A DNA stretch of 64,000 bases, taken from Macrostomum hystrix. Its lineage: Eukaryota > Animalia > Platyhelminthes. The notes under the pieces were generated by a model. The model searched no databases, was not told the DNA's origin, and worked only from the letters and a program-made list of their open reading frames with translations. Made by a program: the position numbers and the translations under genes. The number at the start of each line of letters is the position of its first letter. Position 1 is the stretch's first letter. Below, piece after piece: positions 4,171 through 47,000 of this stretch. The stretch spans positions 5,208,001-5,272,000 of the forward strand of contig CATNEN010000034.1 in the NCBI GenBank assembly GCA_950097015.1. Direction: 5' to 3'.

Positions 4171-4758
4171 GGTTGTTGGTTGTTAGACGGTGTTTTTTAT
4201 TAGGCCTACTAATATCGACTTAGTTTAACATCTATTTGCTCGTTTGTGGGTTTAATCGACTTTTCCAATTTTGCATTGACTTGTTTATCTTACTAAAAAA
4301 GAAATGAAAAAAACATTGCATAACTCATTTGCTGTAATTTTGTTTCATGTTGTCATTTCAAATATGTAATTAAAAGTCTAGAAGTGCACGACGCACTTTA
4401 ACTTTTGTAATTTGACGCCTGTTTAGCTTATTGTGTGTGTACTTCTCCTATAAGTGCACCTAAACAGTTCGTAGGCTTGTGCATCTAAACAAAATACTAT
4501 CGTCTTAGCGCTATAGTTCTGTGTGAATTTAATTACCCGTTGCTCGTAGTTTCACGAAATAGTGAAAAATAAACTTGTTCTCATACGTTGAGTGTAGTGT
4601 GTTGGCCCGCATTCTTGCTTCATTGCTCCAGATAATTTATTTAGTCAGAAATTTGCTCATTTTGTTATTTTACGCTTTGAGTTTTTACAAATTCACAAAG
4701 AAGCTAACAGGCGAAAAACATTTTTTAAGGTTGGTTTAGAAAATTCATCCCCACTTAA

Positions 4759-5363
4759 CAGTAGAACTACAAAGGGGGGGAATTTCCCCCCCCCGACAAT
4801 TTTTTTTGCTGCACCCGAACGGAACAATGCAAGCACACGAAACTCAAGAACACGGGCCAACTTTTAGTTGCGCATCTTCTGAAACAAGAATCAAGTCGCC
4901 AGCTCTTCAGACCGTCGAGATATTCAATGTTTCTGGCCGAAGGTCCGATTTTTCCCATAAGAGCTAGTGTATTTCATACACCCCTATACACGAATTTGCA
5001 CTGCGCCTCAGTGCGGCCTTTCCAGACCTTCAAACTTTATCAGCATGTCACCCGAATGTGCTTGCATCATCTCCGACTTCGGCGGTCACCGACCTTTATC
5101 TAGATCTATCTCTCTTACCTATCTAGACCTTCAAGAGCTACAACAGGTGGAACTAGGCCACTATGGACACCCTGACGCGAATTTCTCCAATTTCACTGTT
5201 CAAGCCTAACTATTAGGCGCAGCTCAACCACAGGACACCCTCGACTAATCAGTCAACCAATCAGTCACCCCCAAAGCATTCAGGCGCTGGCAAAAACATT
5301 TTTGGGGGGAAAACCCCCCCCTTGGTATAAAAACGGGCGGAAAATGGCTTAGTAGTCCTACTG
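4759..5363. mobile_element. Non-autonomous DNA transposon (MITE), 605 bp, CAGTAG termini, TTAA target duplication
   Basis: TTAA(4755-4758)|CAGTAGAACTAC ... GTAGTCCTACTG|TTAA(5364-5367). G-run/C-run palindromes lie near both ends. A near-identical copy begins at 41982. Confidence 0.8.
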
Positions 5364-35024: not shown

Positions 35025-38000
35025 GTGCTACAGCAACGGCAGCCGGAGAAGATCTTGAACTAGGCGAGATGGAAGATCCCAAGCAGAGCACCTCCAGCTA
35101 CCTCAAGGAGCAGTTCTTTGCATTCTTCCAGCCTTCTGACAACAAGTTGGCGATGAAGCTGTTTGGCAACAAAAACGCCCTGCTGAAGGAGAAGCGTCGC
35201 CAGCAGCAGTCGGGCAAATGGATCATTCACCCGTGCAGCAACTTCAGGTAAGCGGCGGAGAGGCGGTCAAATAGAGAGCCTCATTAGGCCTCACTGAAAA
35301 GTGCGCAGGCGTAATAAGTACCTTTGTGAGGCAGTTAGACAGTCGGCAATAAATTATCCGACACGAGGAAAGCAATAAATAAAGAGAAAAAACTTAGTTC
35401 AATGATTGAGTTTCTTTTCGAAATCGAACTCCCTGGAAGACTTTCTATCTGTAAATACAAAGCTGTGAATATCGGGCCAGGAAGACAGATGCAGTGGTCT
35501 ATGAAGCTTCGCGAAGTCGAGGCAATCTTCTGCTGAGGAGGAAAAAGTTAAGGCAGCGTTGGCTTAGGCTAAGTGCAGGCCCTAATCACTTACAACTTGT
35601 TCGTCTAACGAGTAGCATATACCGGAGACTATAGAGTGCAGTAGGAGAGCCAGATGAAGCAATCAAGGATTCCCTGTATTTCTCTTTGGCCTTCGAATTG
35701 CGCAGCTTCCAGTAGTTTTACGAGCTTAATCTACGGTCTAACAAACTGGCTGTTCTCCTATATTTTGCGCAATGTTTTTAATGCACTTCATTGGGTCACA
35801 GAGTTTATTGTATTTAGCTCCTCATCGAACGAGGAAATTCGGCTGCATAGGAAATTACACGGGTTCTTTTTGCTGCAGAAGAAAGTAAAGAAACATCCGC
35901 ATCAATGGGAGATTCGCCCCTCACCTGATCTTGACATTCGTCTAACATCTACCCGTTGCGAGCTTTCACTTTCTCGGTTTATCCCTCCTCTTAATTTCTT
36001 CCCCCTAAACACGTTTCCAGGGAAAATTCCAATGCCAGACGAAAGATTGATCAGATTAAGGAAATTGTACGCGTTCGCTTTCCCATTTATATGATCATTA
36101 AATTGAAAGGCCAAAATAATTCATATAGAAATAAGCCTGTGTGCACAAGCCTTTGGTAGAAAAGCCAAAATTAGGCTTTTACTTTCATTATCCTTTAGTT
36201 TTATCAGCGTTTTTTATTCAAAACTTTCTGAGGATAAATTCCCATAAAAATAGCTGAGATCCTTAACGAACATAGACGAACATCCCGGATCCCAATGCTG
36301 AGCATCCCGGATCCCAATGCTGAACATCCTGGATCCCAATGCTGAGCATCCCGGATCCCAATGCTGAGCATCCCGGATCCCAATGCTGAGCATCCCGGAT
36401 CCCAATGCTGAGCATCCCGGATCCCAATGCTGAACATCCTGGATCCCAATGCTGAACATCCTGCATCCCAATGCTGAACATCCTGGATCCCAATGCTGAA
36501 CATCCCGGATCCCAATTCTAAACATCATGGATACAAATGCTGAACATCCCGGATCCCAATGCTAGACATCCTCGATCCCAATGCTAGACATCCTGGACCC
36601 CAATGCTGAACATCCTGGATCCCAATGCTGAACATCCTGGATCCCAATGCTGAACATCCTGGATCTCAATGCTGAATGCAAAGGTATTAACTATCGCTAC
36701 GATTATTGGGATAGTTTAGCTGTACAAGTAGCCAGGCCATTTTGGATTATTGTTGGTCCCATAAAAATCTGGCATTGCAAGACCATGGCCTATTTGTATA
36801 GGCAAGCAAATAAATACCTCTTGTCAAATTGATGAGGAACGAAATTGCTTCAAGCGACTCATTAAACGGAAGAGACATTTATTTGGACAAAATCCGGTTT
36901 CCACAGGCCAGTAGCAAAGTTCTCTTCTGTTCGGCCCTCTTTTCTCTTTACTCATCCTGCCGAGTTTTTCTTTTGCCTCAACGCAGTCGACAGAAGAGTG
37001 GATCGGTGGGTTGGCGAGTAATCAGCGGAGGAGAGAATAAAGAGGAAGAGAAGCAGGACGAATGAGAAAGGGGAGATTTTCGGTCAACGGGGCTTTGAGC
37101 AGACGGAATCGACCAGTTGGTCCTCTTCTGCCTTAATGACGGGGGTGGCGTAGAGGAGAAAGACTGAGCAGCAACAACAAGTGCGCACGGCACACCAGGC
37201 CTGTCCCATTCCGAAATCTCTTCCCAAAATGACAGTGCCTCTCCTTGCTTGGCCGGTGGTCGACTCCAAATGCGTGCCTAGACACTTGCCCGCGACGGCC
37301 AAATCGATGCGAACCGGCCCAAGAGTATCAATTAGCGGCTTTCGGCCACCATCAAATCACCGGAGCGCTAAACTGGCTCCCGCACCTTGGCCAAACAATT
37401 TGGTCTTGTTTCTTGTTTTCTCTTCATTCGGAAAATTCCAACACTTGATGGGATACTGAAGTGCGCTGTTTATATTTAAACACAGTCGTTCATATGGTTC
37501 ATTTAACAGTAGAGAGGCATTTTTCGGGTGGCATTTCAAATACTCGCAGCCTACTTCACGAAACCGAATGACCGATTTTCGTGAACGTCCACCATGGATT
37601 GGCCACCTTGGTGGGTGGAACCGCGACGGAGACGCGGCTGCAATTTGGTTCCAGTGATTCTTGTCGAAGACCCTGGCGACAAGGCAACTAGCATTGCTCT
37701 GTGTCACCCCGACAAGAATCTTTGAATAACCAGACGATTTCGCTGCTTTGTGATTCTGGAAGTTGTGTAATCGGGTTGAGCGAAAACTTTAAGGCCATGT
37801 TCTGAACTATCATGTCAACTGGTTGAATATTTAGGGAGATCCAGAAAAAGAAAGATGTGGGTATTTAAAGTACATTCCCGTAGTCTTTCTACTGTTAACG
37901 ACCACAAATCAAACTGGAAAGTGAATTAAAGTGAGCTGAATAAACAATTTTTCAGATTCTACTGGGACCTCCTGATGCTAATGCTGCTAATCATTAACCT

Positions 38001-41000
38001 GGTTGTGCTCCCAGTGGCCATATCGTTCTTCAACGAAGACCTCAGTCCGCACTGGATTATATTCAACTGCGTGTCGGATACCATCTTTTTAAGCGACATT
38101 GCTGTCAACTTTAGAACAGGTACGAGACGGCAATACAGTTCGTTTTCAAGTTTATTATATTTTAATAATTCTAGCTTTAGCACTTCTTTAAGCGTAACTC
38201 TAATTGGCTTAAGGGGTAGGAAGTTTTCTGAGCGCTTTAGTGGTCAGAAATTGTGCTGATCTCTGATTGGCTGGAAGGGTGAAACTGCAAGCGCTGATAT
38301 ATTATGATTGGCTTGACAGCCAAAATAATATAGGCAGAGGTTAGGCAGAAGTTAATCAAAGCAGTTTTCTGCTGATAAGTCAGAAAGATAAAACAATTTA
38401 CCGACAAGAACTTCCGACCAACCAGATTTTCTGTGATGAGAAAGAACGATGATTCAGGAAACAAGTCAGCTAGATAAAGATACAGAAAAATAAAAGAAAA
38501 ATGTTTCTGTTTCTAATGGATATTCATCGATGCATTCTTGACGGAATAAAGAAGATTTAAGTCAAGAACACAGAAGGGAGGCACTGAAGCGTACCTCGAT
38601 TGCAGGCTCCTGCAACAGCTCTTCCTCCTTAGAGGGCCGCCGATGCCACTTGATTCAGAAAATCACCTGGCCTCATTAATTTCGTCTGCTAACTGCAGTT
38701 TCGTCTGTAGACTCTTCAGCCTGGCAATCACGTAGAACTAATAGAGGCTCACCCACTTATCTCTATGCTCAAGGCGTGATCACAAACGACTTTGCCGAAG
38801 AGATCATACTCGACCCCAAGATGATAGCGCAGCACTATGTCAAGTCTTGGTTCTTCCTCGACCTCATCTCATCAATTCCAATGGACTACATATTCCTGGT
38901 GCTAAACCAGCGGAACAACATCAGCCAGCTCGTGCACGCAGGTGAGACCATACTAAATTTTTTCAGCCAATCAGATTAGACTTGAAAGAAGGCCGAATTT
39001 CTTTTGCAGGCCGAGCGCTGCGCATCCTGCGGCTGGCCAAGCTGCTCAGCCTGCTGAGACTGCTCCGTCTGTCTCGATTGGTCCGCTATGTCAGCCAATG
39101 GGAGGAAGTAAGTCTAATTTTTATAATCAGATTTTGATATTCATTAAAACACAAAAATGTACATTGCTTTACTAACCATTCTTTTATTGGCGTAGACGTA
39201 TTGCGTAACGTATAATAGTAAGCGCCAGGGACTGTTTGAAAGGCCTATCTAAAAGCCCCGGTCGGCTTGTATGTCAGTCTCTCTCTGTGTCTGGTTTCAG
39301 TTTTTTCAAATTGCCAGCAAGTGCTTCGGTATTATCAAGCTGGTGCTAATCATGATGCTGCTCGGTCACTGGAACGCCTGCTTCCAGTTTCTCATACCGT
39401 TTCTCAGCGATTTCCCGAGCGACTCCTGGGTGGCTAAGCGTGGACTAAAGGTGACTCTGGGTTGACTAGGCTTCAAATTTGACCAGGTCCATGACTGTCC
39501 TTGAGAATGAATTATTGATCTAAAACACCGAAGATCACAAGCAAACTCCCATTGCACAATCTAGCCAGGTTGTCAGAGATGCCTAAATATAACTTGCGAT
39601 TCAACAGCCTTTCCGGTACACTGACGTCTGGCTCAGGGTTTTGCTTTGCGGAGTTAGTTGAACTTCGGTGTGCATTGATCAGCAATTTCCTCGCTCCTGC
39701 CCTGTACATCCTTGATCCCGGTTCTGAACATCCTTGATCCCGATTCTGAACATCCTTGATCCCAGTTCTGAACATCCTTGATCCCAGTTCTGAACATCCT
39801 TGATCTCAGTTCTGAACATCCTTGATCCCGATTCTGAACATCCTTGATCCCAATTCTGAACATCCGTGATCCCAGTTCTGAGCATCCTTGATCCCGGTTC
39901 TGAGCATCCTTGATCCCAATTCTGAACATCCGTGATCCCAGTTCTGAGCATCCTTGATCCCGGTTCTGAGCATCCTTGATCCCAATTTGGTTGTGGCACA
40001 TTGCCTGAGAATTGAACAATCACTGAAGTCCATGACTCGCGGCTCATTGCTTCAAGCCTCAAGCTTTCTGGCCCCAGAAAATTGAAGTCATGGCTGCATG
40101 GAATTTCTTTTTCGAAGCGTCATTGGTTTTGATTTTATTGATCTAAGAGCAAATGGTCTCAGCTTTCTCTTGTCAAGGAACTGTGAGATATCATAGTTAT
40201 AGTAGCCTTAGCTTACTGACACAATTCCAACACATGTTTTATAGTCATAATCTACGTAGTTAATCCTGATTTGTGCACTTAGTTAGTCTGTGGTCCCTGA
40301 TCATTTGTTTCTTTGTTCGGAAGTATTTTTTCGATAGGATGTTATAATTCGTGGCTAAAATGGATTCATTTTCATTTATAATAGTAAATATGAATGAGTT
40401 ATTGACACTCCATCCTGGCCCTTGCACTCCTGTTTGACAAGACATTCCAAGCACAAACTCACTCACACACACACACCTGCTTTCAGTTGCTGAACGTTGC
40501 CAATAAGTTTATGGGGATATTTAACCTCGTGCTGCTGATGCTGCTGCTTGGCCACTGGAACGCCTGCCTGCAGTTCCTGATCCCCCTGCTTCAGGACTTC
40601 CCGGACCAGTCCTGGGTGGCCCGTTGCGGCCTGAAGGTGAATTTTTCGTGGCCTCTTCACTCACAGCATCTGTACTCAGCCTTCCTTCCTCATTTCATTC
40701 AACCAAGATGCTCGCATGCTTAGCATTGTTCGAAGCGTTCTTCAGCTCGTGTTAACAATGCAATCTTGCACTTTTGCAGTTTTAAGGTCTACTTTAAACA
40801 TGTATGGCATTTTTTATCAACAAAGCAAGAATCGCAAAATTTAAGCAACCGCTCGTGCGGTTTTATGTGGAGAATATCCCTACAGATTGACATGTTCACC
40901 AATTAGAAAATGCACTTTCTTATCCTTCGGTATTGTGTAAAGCCTTTTTGTACAGCACGCAAATTTGTATGTTTTTTAAATTATTATCTTTATCGCTTTT

Positions 41001-44000
41001 CGGATAAATTTAAGCCATTCAACTGGCATTGCTACCGTGACCCGAGGTGAATCAGACCAGGTGCAATTGTTGCCCTTCAAACAGTCTGTCATGTCTGTTC
41101 TCTTTCCAGCTGCTAAATGTAGCGTCAGTGTTCATCCGGGTCGTGAACCTAGTCTGCCTGATGCTGCTGCTGGCGCACTGGAATGGCTGCCTGCAGTTCC
41201 TTGTGCCAGCTATCCAGGACTTCCCCAAGGACTCCTGGGTTAGGAAGCTAAACATCCAGGTACCGCCTCCCCGCCTCACCTTACTCCTGAGACTGTATGA
41301 TAAGCCGGAGTCTGAAAATTTAGTTTTTACCTTCATCAGTTTTGTTACCATATTTTTTTTATTCTGATGAATTAGTTACTAAATTTTACTTTGACTTAAA
41401 TTTTGCTCTCATGAATTCACAATGTATTTCACAGAAAAAAATCATTTCTTCACTAACTAACCGATTTATAGTGGAACAAAAGCAATTAAACCAAGCCCAG
41501 CAACAACTACCCAAAGCTGTGTACAAAGCTTCCACACATACCCGACATCAGTTCAGCTCTTTTTTTATTTATTCAGGATAAAATTTTTAATTCTACTCGT
41601 TATTAGAAATTTTCTCTAATTTATAGGAGTCTTCATTTGTAACTTTAAAAAGTTCAGCATTGTTAGCGCTAATGCACATTAACATGGAATAAGCGCTCAC
41701 CTGTTTAACAAACATTCGCATGAGTGACTATACACTCGCATGCAAAGTACTTGCATGAACAATACCGTATATACACTCTGTTTAAAATATGTTTATTTCC
41801 GCATGTTGAACGCATATTCTGACAAGAAAGTTAATTGGACGGAAATGAGAAACAAAGGACAAACAAGGTTCCAAAAAATCTAAAAAATTATGACGCTTCG
41901 AAAAATGCTCGCCACAATGCGCATCTTGAAGCAGCAGAGCCCTCAACCGCGGGACAAGCACACATGACGACACATATTTAACAGTAGAACTACCAAGGGG
42001 GGGGGGAATTCCCCCCCTGACAATTTTTTTGCTGCACCCGAACGGAACAATGCAGGCACACGAAACTCAAGAACACGGGCCAACTTTTTGTTGCGCATCT
42101 TCTGAAACAAGAAACAAGTCGCCAGCTCTTCAGACCGTCGAGATATTCAATGTTTCTGGCCGAAGGTCCGATTTTTCCCATAAGAGCTTGTGTATTTCAT
42201 ACACCCCTATACACGAATTTGCAGTGCGCCTCAGTGCGGCCTTTCCAGGCCTTCAAACTTTATCAGCATGTCACCCGAATGTGCCTGCATCATCTCCGAC
42301 TTCGGCGGTCACCGACCTTTATCTAGACGGAGCAGCTGGACCTTCAACAAGTAATAGTTGAGTTTAAGCCAATATCGAGGCTTTATTAGAGAAAGTTGAA
42401 AAATTCGCTTTAGGGACTCCATTGCCAGCAGGAGGCACCCTGCTGACGGTGCTGACGGCGTCGGGTGGTGACTGATTGGTTGACGGACTAGAGGAGCATG
42501 TAAAGTAGTTGAGTGTTGCCCAATATCGAGGCTTGATCAGCGAAAGTAGAGAAATTCGCTTTAGGGACTCCATAGTCGGCTGGTGCCACTTGTTGAAGGT
42601 CCAGCAGCTCCGTCTAGATAAAGGTCGGTGACCGCCGAAGTCGGAGATGATGCAAGCACATTCGGGTGACATGCTGATAAAGTTTGAAGGTCTGGAAAGG
42701 CCGCACTGAGGCGCAGTGCAAATTCGTGTATTGGGGCGTATGAAATACACTTACTCTTATGGGAAAAATCGGACCTTCGGCCAGAAACATTGAATATCTC
42801 GACGATGTCGATGTTTTGAGATTCTGGAGGCTTTTCATCTGATAGAGCGGAAAATGTTTGGACTTTTATGCGGATTGCTTGAATCTTTTTTGAGATACCG
42901 AAAAACAATTTTTTTAATTGTTAATCAGTTAATCAGTTTTTCTACGTTTAAAATGAAAGATACAAAACAGAAACAGTGTGGGCTGCCACGGTTGAAGGCT
43001 GTAAGCTGTCAAATCCTTCTGCCAAGTCTAAAAAAACTCCCTTGCGTTCCCAGAATGCGATTATCATTGATTTATTGATTAGTCCACAATTCTCAGTCCG
43101 TTTATCCCCCCCAAACACATTGTCCCCATTCTGCAACGCCAACGACCACGGTCGACGCTCGGACAGGAGGTGCACTGGTTCCAGCAGTACACCTGGGCCC
43201 TGTTCAAAGCCATGAGTCACATGCTGAGCATTGGCTACGGTCAGCACCCGCCAACAAGCATCAGCGAGGCCTGGATCACCATCGTCAGCATGATGACGGG
43301 ATCGTCCTGCTATGCCCTGTTTGTTGGCCATGCGGCTGCTCTCATTCAGAGCTTCGACACATCGAAACGTTTGTACAGAGAGAAGGTGAGTCCAGTTAAT
43401 TCTGTAGTTAAATGAATTTTTCAGGGGGTGGCAGAAGGCATAACGTGTTTGCCTCTGGCACCAAGGTCCCTGAGCTGGATTCTCTTGCGAGGCCACATTC
43501 ATTTGGGGCGCAGCCGCGGAGAGAAGGCTTGGGGGCTTGTCTTGCAATTTACGCCCTCGAGGGCCAACCTCCAAGGCACAGTGAGAGTGTACACTGCCTG
43601 ACGATGAGAAATTCAGGGCAGATGTACACACCTGTGTGAGCGTGTGTCTGTGTACGGTATCTATGTGCGTGTGTGCTCAGGAGTCAGCGAAATGGGCAGA
43701 ATTTCCCCCTCACTGGCTACGGGCCCTTTGACACCAAGTGATGTACCAGTGGCCCCTAACCCTCCTGCAATTATTATTGTTATTACGAGCTATTATAAAA
43801 TTATTCTGTGATGCTTTTTATCGCGAAGGTAAACATTAAAGGTAACGATTCTGACAAAAGTTCCCCATTTTCTATAAGCGCAACCTTTTAGATCGCTGCT
43901 AAGTACACCTCGAGGTATACCAATTAGTTTAAATTTCATCCCATTGTCGACTACATCTACCTGTATATACGCTGAGGGAATCTCATTAGGCTTTTCTACC

Positions 44001-47000
44001 TGTTAATATTTTAACTTTTATCACTTGTTCCTAAAAACCTGGCCTAATCAGTTCAAGCAGGTTGAGGAGTACATGGCCTATCGAAAGCTGCCGCGAGCAC
44101 TGCGTCAAAGGATTGCCAACTACTATGAGCACCGCTATCAGGGCAAGATGTTTAACGAGAACGACATCCTGAGCGAGCTGTCCGAGTGTCTGCGCGAGGT
44201 GAGAAAGCTTTGGAGATGGTTTGCAGAACGCGTAACTCCGACTGTACAAACAGAACCTCAATTCAAGCACGTGCTCTTGTACATACCTCAGAGAGTGTTC
44301 TAGTACATACCTCAGAGAGTGTTCTAGTACATACCTCAGAGTGTGTTCTAGTACATACCTCAGAGAGTGTTCTAGTACATACCTCAGAGAGTGTTCTAGT
44401 ACATACCTCAGAGAGTGTTCTAGTACATACCTCAGAGAGTGTTCTAGTACATACCTCAGAGAGTGTTCTAGTACATACCTCAGAGAGTGTTCTAGTACAT
44501 ACCTCAGAGAGTGTTCTAGTACATACCTCAGAGAGTGTTCTAGTACATACCTCAGAGAGTGTTCTAGTACATACCTCAGAGAGTGTTCTAGTACATACCT
44601 CAGAGAGTGTTCTAGTACATACCTCAGAGAGTGTACTAGTACATACCTCAGAAAGTGTACTAGTTTCAGAAAGTTCAGAAAGTTCAAGTACCTTAAGTAC
44701 AAATACCAACAAAATATGTCTCACTAAGAAGCCTACAGAATATCGTTAACCCAACCATCCTTACCACATCCAACCAGCAAATCATCAACTACAACTGCCG
44801 CGCCCTGGTGGCGGCGGTGCCATTCTTCACTTACGCCGATCAGGACTTTGTCTCCGAGGTCGTCACCCGACTCAAATACGAAGTTTTCCAACCTGGCGAT
44901 CTCATCATCAAGGAGGGCACCATAGGCACCAAGATGTACTTCATTCAGGAGGGCATTGTGGACATCATTACGAGAGACGGGGAGGTAGCGACCAGCCTGT
45001 CGGATGGGTCCTACTTTGGAGGTGAGGCTGCTTCTCGCACCAAGGTCCCTGAGCTCGATTCCGCCGCGAGGCCACATTCATTTGGGGCTTGTCATGCAAT
45101 CTACGCCCTTGAGGGCCAACCTCCAAGGCACAGTGAAATGTACACTGCCTGACGATGAAAAAGTCATGGCAGATGTACAACCCTGATGTACAGATGTGAG
45201 CGTGTGTCTGTGTACGGTATCTGTGTGCGAGTGTGCTCAGGAGTCAACGAAATGGGCAGAATTGTCTCCTGGCTTGCTCACCATTGCCAGCAGCCCTCCT
45301 GCCATTATTATTTAGATTTTTACTATTAACCACGTTGGTCTTCAAACTTTCTTATAAACTACGAGTACAAGGAGCTTCTAGGAAAAACACTAAAACTTAG
45401 GTCGTTCTCAATCAATCGATGACATAGGCGCGAATCCTCCAATTCTCACCTTTTTCCTATCATTAGTTTATCGAATTCTTTGGCCGAATTCTCGCATTCG
45501 ACCCCGGCTCATTTCGGTCTGTGGAGGAGGATGGGGTTGGCTGCAGCTAGCAACGGCAGCTTCCCAGGTATTGAGTCGCAGCTAATTGAGTTTTCGTCCG
45601 TGCGTGGGCCACAGGCACTATTGTGAGCAGAGCAACCAATTTTGTCTCTGCTTCCCCCCGTCCACTGAGATTGATTCCTGTGTAGTTAATCGCCTGCCAC
45701 GCTTATTAGTGACTCGAAGAATCCTGATAGATAGATAAGACAGGCACGGATGGGATTCAGAATATGAGATCTGGGGAGTTGGAGCGCGGAGGGGGAATTG
45801 TCGTTCGAGGAGTGAGAGAGACTCAATTTTTCCCCTTCGTGGGAGTTTCCCAGAGAGACACAGAGTAGGGAGAGTTCAGATTCCGCACCGCCCTGGGGGC
45901 CGGACACTAATGAGGACCGAGTTTGCCGTATCGGTGGGGACTGCGGCAATGCCTGCCTGTGGAAACCCGCTCCCCTACTCTAAAGGGTTTGGAAATCCCA
46001 TCTGATAAGTGCGGCTGTGCGTTTTTCCAGGAAAACTTTTCGGGAATTACAGCTTAATGTATATTTTTCATTGTGAAGCTTTCAAACTAGATAGAAAATT
46101 TGTTGCATTTATCTTGTCTGCAAAATTGAATTCCCAAATAGGTCTGGGATTAAAGTGTGTTAAAATGACTCGGCCAAATGGGGAAAAATTAATAATTATG
46201 ACTACATTCATTTGTTTTTGTGTGAAAAAATCATGTACAAATATAGAACAATTGCCGAACTGATGCCATGACTGACACCACCGATTCAATGTTCCAAAAC
46301 ACTTGTGCAATGACCCAAATCACCGATACCATGACCCAAACACTGACATAATGACCTAAAACATTGATATAATGACCCAAGAAACAATAACCCAAATCTT
46401 GAGATCATGACTCAAGCCATCGATAGAATGATCCAAATAACTAACTTCATGACCCAAACAACTGATACAATTACCCAAACCGCCGATGCAATGACCCAAA
46501 CCACTGATACAATGACCCAAAACACTGACATCATGACCTAAAACATAGATATAATAAACCAGATAAAATAAATATAATAATAGATATAATAAGCAACAAT
46601 GACCCAAGCCATTGATAAATGACCCGAATCACTGACGCAATGACCCAAGCCATTAACGCCATGACCCAAAACCGCCGATGCAATGACCCAAACCACTGAT
46701 ACAATGACCTAAACCACCGATGAAATCACTCAAATCGCAGAGATTTGCCTGCTGACAAATGCCAGACGAGTAGCCAGCGTCCGTGCCGAGACCTACTGCA
46801 ACCTGTACTCTCTGGAGAGGGAGAATTTCCTGTCCGTGCTGGACAACTATCCGCTGATGCGTCGCACCATGGAATCCGTGGCCGCGGAAAGGCTGAGCAA
46901 GATTGGCCAGAACCCACAGATGGTGAGCAGTCGAGCTGATCTCAAAGAGGACCTCAACCTGGTCAAGGAGATTGTCAACCAGGTTACACCGGCTACCAGC

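Follow-up and report, generated by a model that had tools for sequence, protein, structure and literature searches.

Candidate competing intron pairings beside three tandem S5 exons of a Macrostomum hystrix HCN gene

We analysed a 64-kb window of the Macrostomum hystrix genome. Judged by their coding sequence, three tandem 150-nt S5 exons in this window (A, B and C) are part of an HCN (pacemaker-channel) gene. The exons of the cluster and the two constitutive exons on either side of it are as follows.

39010–39107, forward strand: upstream constitutive exon, end of S4 (...RYVSQWEE), read from the sequence, with a GTAAGT donor at 39108
39301–39450, forward strand: exon A, 150 nt, phase 0-0, placed by translation and splice sites; encodes the S4-S5 linker, S5 and the turret
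40487–40636, forward strand: exon B, 150 nt, phase 0-0, the copy closest to the single S5 exon of parasitic flatworms
41110–41259, forward strand: exon C, 150 nt, phase 0-0, the copy closest to the S5 exon of other animals
43167–43385, forward strand: downstream constitutive exon, encoding the pore region and 89% identical to Hymenolepis in amino acids

Flatworm HCN proteins matched 39006–39107 at 85–94% (tblastn). Exons A, B and C have GT-AG sites throughout, and their pairwise protein identity is 46–64% (64% between A and B). Exon B shows 80% amino-acid identity to the sole S5 exon at the Hymenolepis locus. The exons were searched against the references singly, exon by exon. Word-index protein searches with the open reading frames around A, B and C returned parasitic flatworms or nothing, and no Macrostomum relative. 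In an exhaustive search with exon A, the top matches were neodermatan flatworms and the annelid Lamellibrachia, and none came from Macrostomum. A metagenome scan with exon A gave no match; the same kind of scan with the downstream pore exon gave 80 contigs at 70–75% identity, which are probably annelid, given their resemblance to the Lamellibrachia protein.

A, B and C may be spliced in a mutually exclusive manner. Two simple means of exclusion can be ruled out: steric hindrance, because the inter-exon introns measure 1036 nt (A-B) and 473 nt (B-C), and nonsense-mediated decay, because the exon lengths preserve the reading frame. The donors of all three variable exons have no G at +5, and the acceptor of the downstream constitutive exon at 43167 has a very pyrimidine-poor tract. 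Together these features fit the pairing-assisted splicing described for srp (PMC4691838).

Three intronic sites in the cluster, which we treat as a candidate docking site and its two selectors, are related by long complementarity.

41890–41909, forward strand: candidate docking site, 20 nt, in the intron after exon C; its extended pairing region is 41875–41934
40108–40123, forward strand: selector 1, in the A-B intron, a perfect 16/16 complement of 41890–41905; its composite long-range stem spans 40047–40136
40722–40738, forward strand: selector 2, in the B-C intron, a 16/17 complement of 41893–41909

The selectors have a common 10-nt core, TTCGAAGCGT, which occurs, on either strand, in only three places in the 64 kb: selector 1, selector 2 and the docking site. 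One docking site in an intron flanking the cluster is therefore complementary, through an overlapping core, to two selectors in the inter-exon introns, two for three exons. Because both selectors use that core, only one pairing could exist at a time. The duplex with the docking site was estimated at −34.6 kcal/mol over the extended arms for selector 1 and at −27.2 kcal/mol for selector 2, and these are the two best partners of the docking site, by at least 5 kcal/mol. No repeat with further copies in the window covers any of the three sites, and an Rfam search of the elements gave no match to a known RNA family at E up to 1. We also considered whether the docking site is part of a transposable element in the same intron. 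This was rejected, as the transposable-element copy starts at 41978.

When the native 4.26-kb stretch is folded, the minimum-energy structure has selector 1 paired with the docking site, along with two flanking helices. The ensemble probability of this pairing was about 0.999 and, when selector 1 was blocked, the docking site moved to selector 2 with a probability of about 0.85; both values come from predictions that are unreliable for folds of 2–4 kb and that ignore co-transcriptional folding and bound proteins. When selector 1 is free, selector 2 is predicted to lie in a local hairpin (40723–40761). Local accessibility was at the 79th percentile for selector 1 and at the 87th for the docking site. 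Selector 2 is locally structured, as are the two arms of the upstream pair described below. The local hairpins at the sites were not unusually stable (z-scores of −0.15 to −1.4).

How rare such a set would be depends on how complementarity is scored. Outside a transposable-element hairpin, the 4-kb cluster contains three near-perfect Watson-Crick pairs against a shuffle mean of 0.36, and at least three were reached with P = 0.005 in 2000 shuffles. Two pairs of at least 14/15 that share one arm were found in 4 of the 2000 shuffles (0.2%, P = 0.002), a figure to be read with the fact that the three-way set came from a post hoc search for a second pairing system. By energy or G-U-tolerant scoring, the duplexes of the docking site with its selectors are not exceptional: shuffles are expected to hold about five duplexes at −28 kcal/mol or below, and 2.5–8% of them contain a three-way set of comparable score. 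Near-perfect Watson-Crick matching is also an expected product of recent DNA-level events.

The strongest alternative is that the pairs have no role in splicing and are due to coincidence, or are the decaying remains of the tandem duplication and of a small inverted duplication; any exon choice would then be set by splice-site strength and protein factors. We regard this explanation as a serious one, although somewhat less than evenly probable. It draws on the resemblance of the pairs to shuffled sequence by energy and G-U-tolerant measures and on the post hoc nature of the search. The rest of the window holds isolated 15–20-nt inverted pairs at roughly 0.1 per kb, and the genome is rich in minisatellites and transposable elements, some of them within these introns. 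Moreover, the pairing logic for the middle exon is incomplete. For a choice of B, we found no pairing above shuffle level able to loop out exon A; among duplexes of the first intron with the A-B intron, the best (−20.7 to −22 kcal/mol) was equalled in 47% of shuffles. However, the rarity of two pairs with a shared arm speaks against chance, and so does the location of all three sites outside repeats seen elsewhere in the 64 kb.

The comparison of the paralogous introns also argues against neutral leftovers. The selector cores lie in register, 376 nt 5′ of exon B and 381 nt 5′ of exon C, and the rest of these introns does not align, which leaves the selectors as their sole conserved island. Between exons B and C, 10 of 15 four-fold degenerate sites differ, which is near saturation. 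The reverse complement of the docking site resembles the consensus of both selectors, and the flank of the docking complementarity that has been kept differs between the two. A second island common to the selectors (GCATG) likewise has a partner near the docking site. The core motifs were absent from the distant HCN loci compared, including the cestode single-exon locus, a result that is uninformative at such distance.

The initial annotation had placed the hub of the system elsewhere. It proposed that a site just before exon C, here called antiX, pairs alternately with a site before exon A (X) and with an 8-nt version of the same word before exon B, so that exons are looped out or the branch region of exon C is masked.

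39230–39244, forward strand: X, GACTGTTTGAAAGGC, in the intron before exon A, 56 nt 5′ of the exon A acceptor
40430–40437, forward strand: the 8-mer CTGTTTGA, 49 nt 5′ of exon B
41072–41086, forward strand: antiX, GCCCTTCAAACAGTC, 24–38 nt 5′ of exon C, in the expected branch-point zone

The sequence details of the A-C pair were confirmed. X and antiX are present where the annotation had put them and form a 14/15 complementary pair, in which 11 bp and 3 bp are separated by an A:C mismatch. AntiX lies close to the exon C acceptor, 23–24 nt before the exon start at 41110, and thus inside the expected branch-point zone. The duplex was estimated at about −24.2 to −24.4 kcal/mol, and among the upstream partners of antiX, X leads by a wide margin (6.7 kcal/mol). 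Within 39108–41260, it is the sole Watson-Crick pair of at least 14/15, a match that 3 of 100 dinucleotide shuffles reach; when the entire 4-kb cluster is considered, at least one such pair turns up in 31% of 2000 shuffles. Its G-U-tolerant helix score was equalled in 47% of shuffles of the region that the annotation had covered. Its energy ranks 18th among the intron-intron duplexes of the cluster, where about 19 at −24 kcal/mol or below are expected in shuffles, and was equalled in 7% of shuffles when this intron pair alone was considered. Taken alone, the X-antiX pair is statistically weak: it is rare by Watson-Crick count (3%) and ordinary by G-U or energy scoring (7–47%).

Folding gave a similar picture. 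The X-antiX helix had an occupancy of 29% when 39108–41260 was folded alone, but this fell to 0.001 or less once the next intron was included, and it stayed there in the longer context even with the stronger competitor blocked. In every minimum-energy fold, both arms are in local hairpins (X pairs with 39264–39282), and the occupancy goes to zero whenever a helix between a selector and the docking site forms.

The 8-mer before exon B is found at the position given for it, and its distance from the acceptor is similar to that of X (49 and 56 nt); its match to antiX, however, is at chance level. The duplex reaches only −11.9 kcal/mol, at least five other upstream sites pair better with antiX, and the 8-mer is outside the six best partners of 41066–41092. 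We judged it to be a chance match. Even if this pairing formed, it would loop out exon B alone, which gives no clean exon choice. The design resembles that of Dscam exon 6, in which a hub in the first intron is complementary to a selector for each variable exon (Graveley 2005, as described in PMC6071210), in that one site would have several competing partners before variable exons. It differs in that the hub is before the last exon and the second partner is a mere 8-mer, so that antiX lacks the several selectors of a docking site. With a B site at chance level, an A-C pair that collapses in the longer fold and a significance that runs from 3% to 47% with the measure, the hub at antiX is very unlikely. 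The general idea of competing long-range intron pairings beside the HCN S5 exons is still plausible, and the hub that stands out statistically, unlike antiX, is at 41890–41909, outside the span originally considered. In a bidirectional layout, X-antiX is best seen as the upstream and weaker half, with X as a candidate upstream docking site and antiX as a candidate downstream selector for exon C.

An equally improbable explanation is that the three copies of TTCGAAGCGT or its reverse complement, with the palindrome TTCGAA inside, are not pairing partners but are bound by a protein, either a DNA-binding factor at an intronic enhancer or insulator or an RNA-binding protein. Three features would agree with it: one 10-mer in three copies confined to this cluster in 64 kb, a strictly Watson-Crick match that lacks G-U pairs, as would a motif recognised on double-stranded DNA, and a palindromic centre that every copy carries on the RNA strand. 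However, a short protein site needs neither complementarity reaching far past the core (16 and 17 nt) with a different flank for each selector nor a partner for the GCATG island near the docking site, and one copy per inter-exon intron with an inverted copy after the last exon is the geometry of a docking site and its selectors.

Well-documented cases of exon choice through competing RNA structures come mainly from insects, alongside a small number of mammalian genes, ATE1 among them. Yue et al. (2016, PMC4691838) have described bidirectional RNA pairing for Drosophila srp exon 4 and for Dscam exon 4 in Hymenoptera and exon 9 in Lepidoptera. The present cluster is similar to this model in several ways. 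An upstream docking site before the cluster and a selector just before the distal exon would correspond to X and antiX, and a downstream docking site after the cluster and selectors after the proximal exons would correspond to the docking site and selectors 1 and 2. The splice sites of the variable exons are weak in both. The order also agrees, in that the upstream-type selector precedes the downstream-type one in the inter-exon intron, so that the pairings cross and would form a pseudoknot. Unlike the srp and Dscam clusters, the present one has three exons, belongs to an ion-channel gene of a flatworm and is known from sequence and predicted folds. It also departs from the model in that its upstream half is statistically weak and that no upstream selector was found for the middle exon.

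The downstream half can also be compared with the downstream ("right") docker systems of 14-3-3 zeta, Mhc, MRP1 and the Dscam exon 4 and 9 clusters (PMC6071210). There is likewise a single docking site after the last variable exon, and the selectors have an overlapping core that allows one duplex at a time. In contrast to those systems, the three exons have just two selectors between them, with none for the exon closest to the docking site. The cluster may belong to the right-docker class, as far as sequence and predicted folding indicate. Ivanov and Pervouchine (2018, PMC6071210) have proposed a duplication model for the origin of competing RNA structures. Selectors in register before B and C, and a docking site whose reverse complement is close to their consensus, are what would be expected if an ancestral stem arm was duplicated together with the exon. 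However, no matching selector copy was found for exon A.

Based on the complementarities, their rarity in shuffles, the dominance and partner switching in the folds, and the similarity of the selectors, our tentative preference, held at somewhat short of even confidence, is that the intron elements around A, B and C are laid out like the insect bidirectional docking and selector design. We infer that the helices may form in vivo and steer exon choice, in the following way. The docking site at 41890–41909 would pair with selector 1 or selector 2, one at a time. Pairing with selector 1 would loop out B and C, moving the exon A donor towards the weak acceptor of the next constant exon; with selector 2, C would be looped out and the exon B donor moved towards that acceptor. 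An X-antiX helix would loop out A and B, so that the upstream donor is brought to exon C. Along the strand, X (39230) is followed by the selectors (40108 and 40722), antiX (41072) and the docking site (41890). The X-antiX helix would therefore cross both helices of the docking site and could coexist with them only as a pseudoknot, which would give three alternative conformations for three exons. The full version of this scheme is a complete three-state RNA switch, in which each of three incompatible helices commits the pre-mRNA to one S5 exon, so that an insect-type bidirectional mechanism, reached in flatworms by duplication of an exon with its stem, tunes HCN gating. We consider that version unlikely.

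Literature searches on mutually exclusive splicing in Macrostomum and on docking and selector sites in HCN genes gave no report of this mechanism for flatworms or HCN channels. If the elements are non-functional, the locus would be a caution that, as long as conservation data are lacking, near-perfect 15–17-nt complementarities in the introns next to duplicated exons can be deceptively persuasive. Should the docking site and both selectors prove functional, the range of the mechanism would be widened to Spiralia, with this locus as a clean natural illustration of how such switches are proposed to arise by duplication. It would also provide a handle for making HCN channels that differ in their S4-S5/S5 segments, in an animal capable of transgenesis.

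The HCN (pacemaker channel) gene lies on the + strand of the window. Between its S4 exon and its pore exon we found three tandem exons, all of which code for the S4-S5 linker, S5 and turret, as follows.

Exons of the HCN S5 cluster
end at 39107, + strand: S4 exon
39301-39450, + strand: exon A, 150 nt, phase 0-0
40487-40636, + strand: exon B, 150 nt, phase 0-0, homologous to A and C
41110-41259, + strand: exon C, 150 nt, phase 0-0, homologous to A and B
start at 43167, + strand: pore exon

G is absent at +5 from the donors of the variable exons, and the acceptor downstream of the cluster is pyrimidine-poor; both features are consistent with pairing-assisted splicing. The top exon-exon complementarity of the cluster joins 40606-40620 in exon B to 41209-41224 in exon C (helix score 39). 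The paired stretches encode SWV (TCCTGGGT) and QDFP (CCAGGACTTCC), so the match probably follows from the protein sequence.

Protein searches, with the exons taken singly by reference, matched HCN proteins of cestodes, flukes and one monogenean, as would be expected for a flatworm. Of the three copies, B comes closest to the lone S5 exon of parasitic flatworms (80% identity to the Hymenolepis locus L001, where only one S5 exon is found), and the S5 exon of other animals resembles exon C. HCN genes of spiralians differ in how many S5 exons they carry. In the cestode Hymenolepis weldensis there is a single, B-like one (L001, 10396-10545). Two tandem copies were seen in the annelid Lamellibrachia satsuma (P0015), in a JGI metagenome protein (P0014) and in a metagenome contig (L058, at 2-127 and 1234-1365); P0014 and P0015 each have the two copies inside one open reading frame. 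The cluster may be old, or it may have been duplicated repeatedly.

The initial annotation proposed that a site before exon C (antiX, 41072-41086) could act as a hub, pairing alternately with a site before exon A (X, 39230-39244) or with an 8-mer before exon B. The complementarity of X and antiX at 14 of 15 positions was confirmed, and CTGTTTGA is indeed present at 40430-40437. X/antiX is the only Watson-Crick pair of at least 14/15 in 39108-41260, a level reached by 3 of 100 shuffles. Over the whole 4-kb cluster, at least one such pair was obtained in 31% of 2000 shuffles. The G-U-tolerant helix score of X/antiX was equalled in 47% of shuffles of 39108-41260, and its duplex energy of −24.4 kcal/mol places it 18th among the duplexes of the cluster (a value matched in 7% of shuffles when only this intron pair is considered). 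Whether X/antiX stands above chance therefore depends on the yardstick; the pair is true as sequence and weak as signal. Isolated near-perfect pairs occur at about 0.1 per kb in the rest of the 64-kb window. Among these few is a 15-nt inverted pair, TCTGATTGGCTGGAA (38262-38276 with 38961-38975), which flanks a constitutive exon ending at 38941.

When 39108-41260 was folded alone, the minimum-energy structure placed both arms in local hairpins, and the proposed long-range X/antiX helix reached 29% in the ensemble. In the minimum-energy structure the X arm (39227-39245) pairs with 39264-39282, a stretch that covers the exon A branch and pyrimidine region. CAGTCT, contained in 39264-39282, recurs 24-29 nt before exon C, and the X arm therefore has two alternative partners, one before exon A and one before exon C. 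With the fold extended to 41977 and the minisatellite left out, the X/antiX helix fell to 0; it stayed at 0.001 even when its stronger competitor, selector 1 with the docking site described below, was blocked. In these models the X/antiX helix is not robust.

The broader idea of RNA pairing survives, better supported, in a different form, with a candidate docking site beyond the span first considered and two candidate selectors.

Candidate pairing elements
40108-40123, + strand: selector 1, A-B intron, complementary to the docking site at 16/16
40722-40738, + strand: selector 2, B-C intron, complementary to the docking site at 16/17
41890-41909, + strand: docking site, 20 nt, intron after exon C

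Of 2000 intron-wise shuffles, 4 contained two near-perfect pairs with a common arm, and 0.5% contained at least three near-perfect pairs. Selectors 1 and 2 are the best two partners of the docking site by a margin of at least 5 kcal/mol. They have in common the 10-mer TTCGAAGCGT, which occurs only three times in the 64 kb, always in the three-way set. None of the three elements lies within a repeat seen elsewhere. In the native 4.26-kb fold, the selector 1/docking-site helix is present, flanked by pairings of 40047-40056 with 41925-41934 and of 40131-40136 with 41875-41880. In the ensemble computed for the fold to 41977, the helix has a probability of about 0.999. When selector 1 was blocked, the docking site moved to selector 2 (probability about 0.85).

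The docking site is outside the intronic TE-like element, which occupies 41978-42804 and carries an inverted repeat (42134-42353 / 42587-42806, 96% identical); a further copy, matching at 96% over 353 nt, is found at 4755-5272. Minus this insertion, the intron after exon C would be about 1 kb and the docking site would lie close to its midpoint. The A-B intron holds a minisatellite (39702-39984, 22-nt unit, 12.9 copies). Farther upstream, another intron of the gene carries a related array (36278-36676, 78-80% identical), and an unrelated 24-nt array (44271-44664) is found in a downstream intron.

The paralogous introns were compared with each other as an internal stand-in for conservation. Aligned with each other, the A-B and B-C introns retain a single conserved island, formed by the selector cores, which lie 376 nt upstream of exon B and 381 nt upstream of exon C; 10 of 15 four-fold degenerate sites differ between exons B and C, which is near saturation. 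Read as its reverse complement, the docking site approximates a consensus of selectors 1 and 2, and the complementary flank that is kept differs between them. An ancestral stem with one arm duplicated along with the exon would predict such a pattern (PMC6071210). The comparison argues for constraint, though with less weight than one between species would carry.

It is quite possible that the elements are a non-functional coincidence or relic. The three-way set stands out less when the scoring tolerates G-U pairs (2.5-8% of shuffles), and its duplexes are ordinary when judged by energy alone; the shared-arm shuffles and the conserved island point the other way. The hub before exon C with partners before A and B is unsupported and improbable: X/antiX is not robust, and the exon-B 8-mer is treated as chance because it pairs with antiX at −11.9 kcal/mol and is outside the six best partners of antiX. 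The recurrent 10-mer might also be read as a DNA-level or protein-binding motif, to which we give little credence.

We tentatively favor, at somewhat less than even confidence, the reading in which the docking site and its selectors guide which exon is chosen. Selector 1 with the docking site would loop out B and C and favor splicing of A to the following exon; selector 2 with the docking site would loop out C and favor B; X with antiX would loop out A and B and favor joining the upstream exon to C. Because X/antiX crosses both selector/docking-site helices, the three states would be mutually exclusive unless a pseudoknot forms. For the choice of B, no pairing above shuffle level was found in the cluster that could loop exon A out. 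The proposed layout would fit the bidirectional model of srp and the Dscam exon 4 and 9 clusters (PMC4691838), and it agrees with the downstream-docker variant of 14-3-3 zeta, Mhc and MRP1 (PMC6071210). If real, the set would extend the docking/selector design, a kind already known, to another phylum and another gene.
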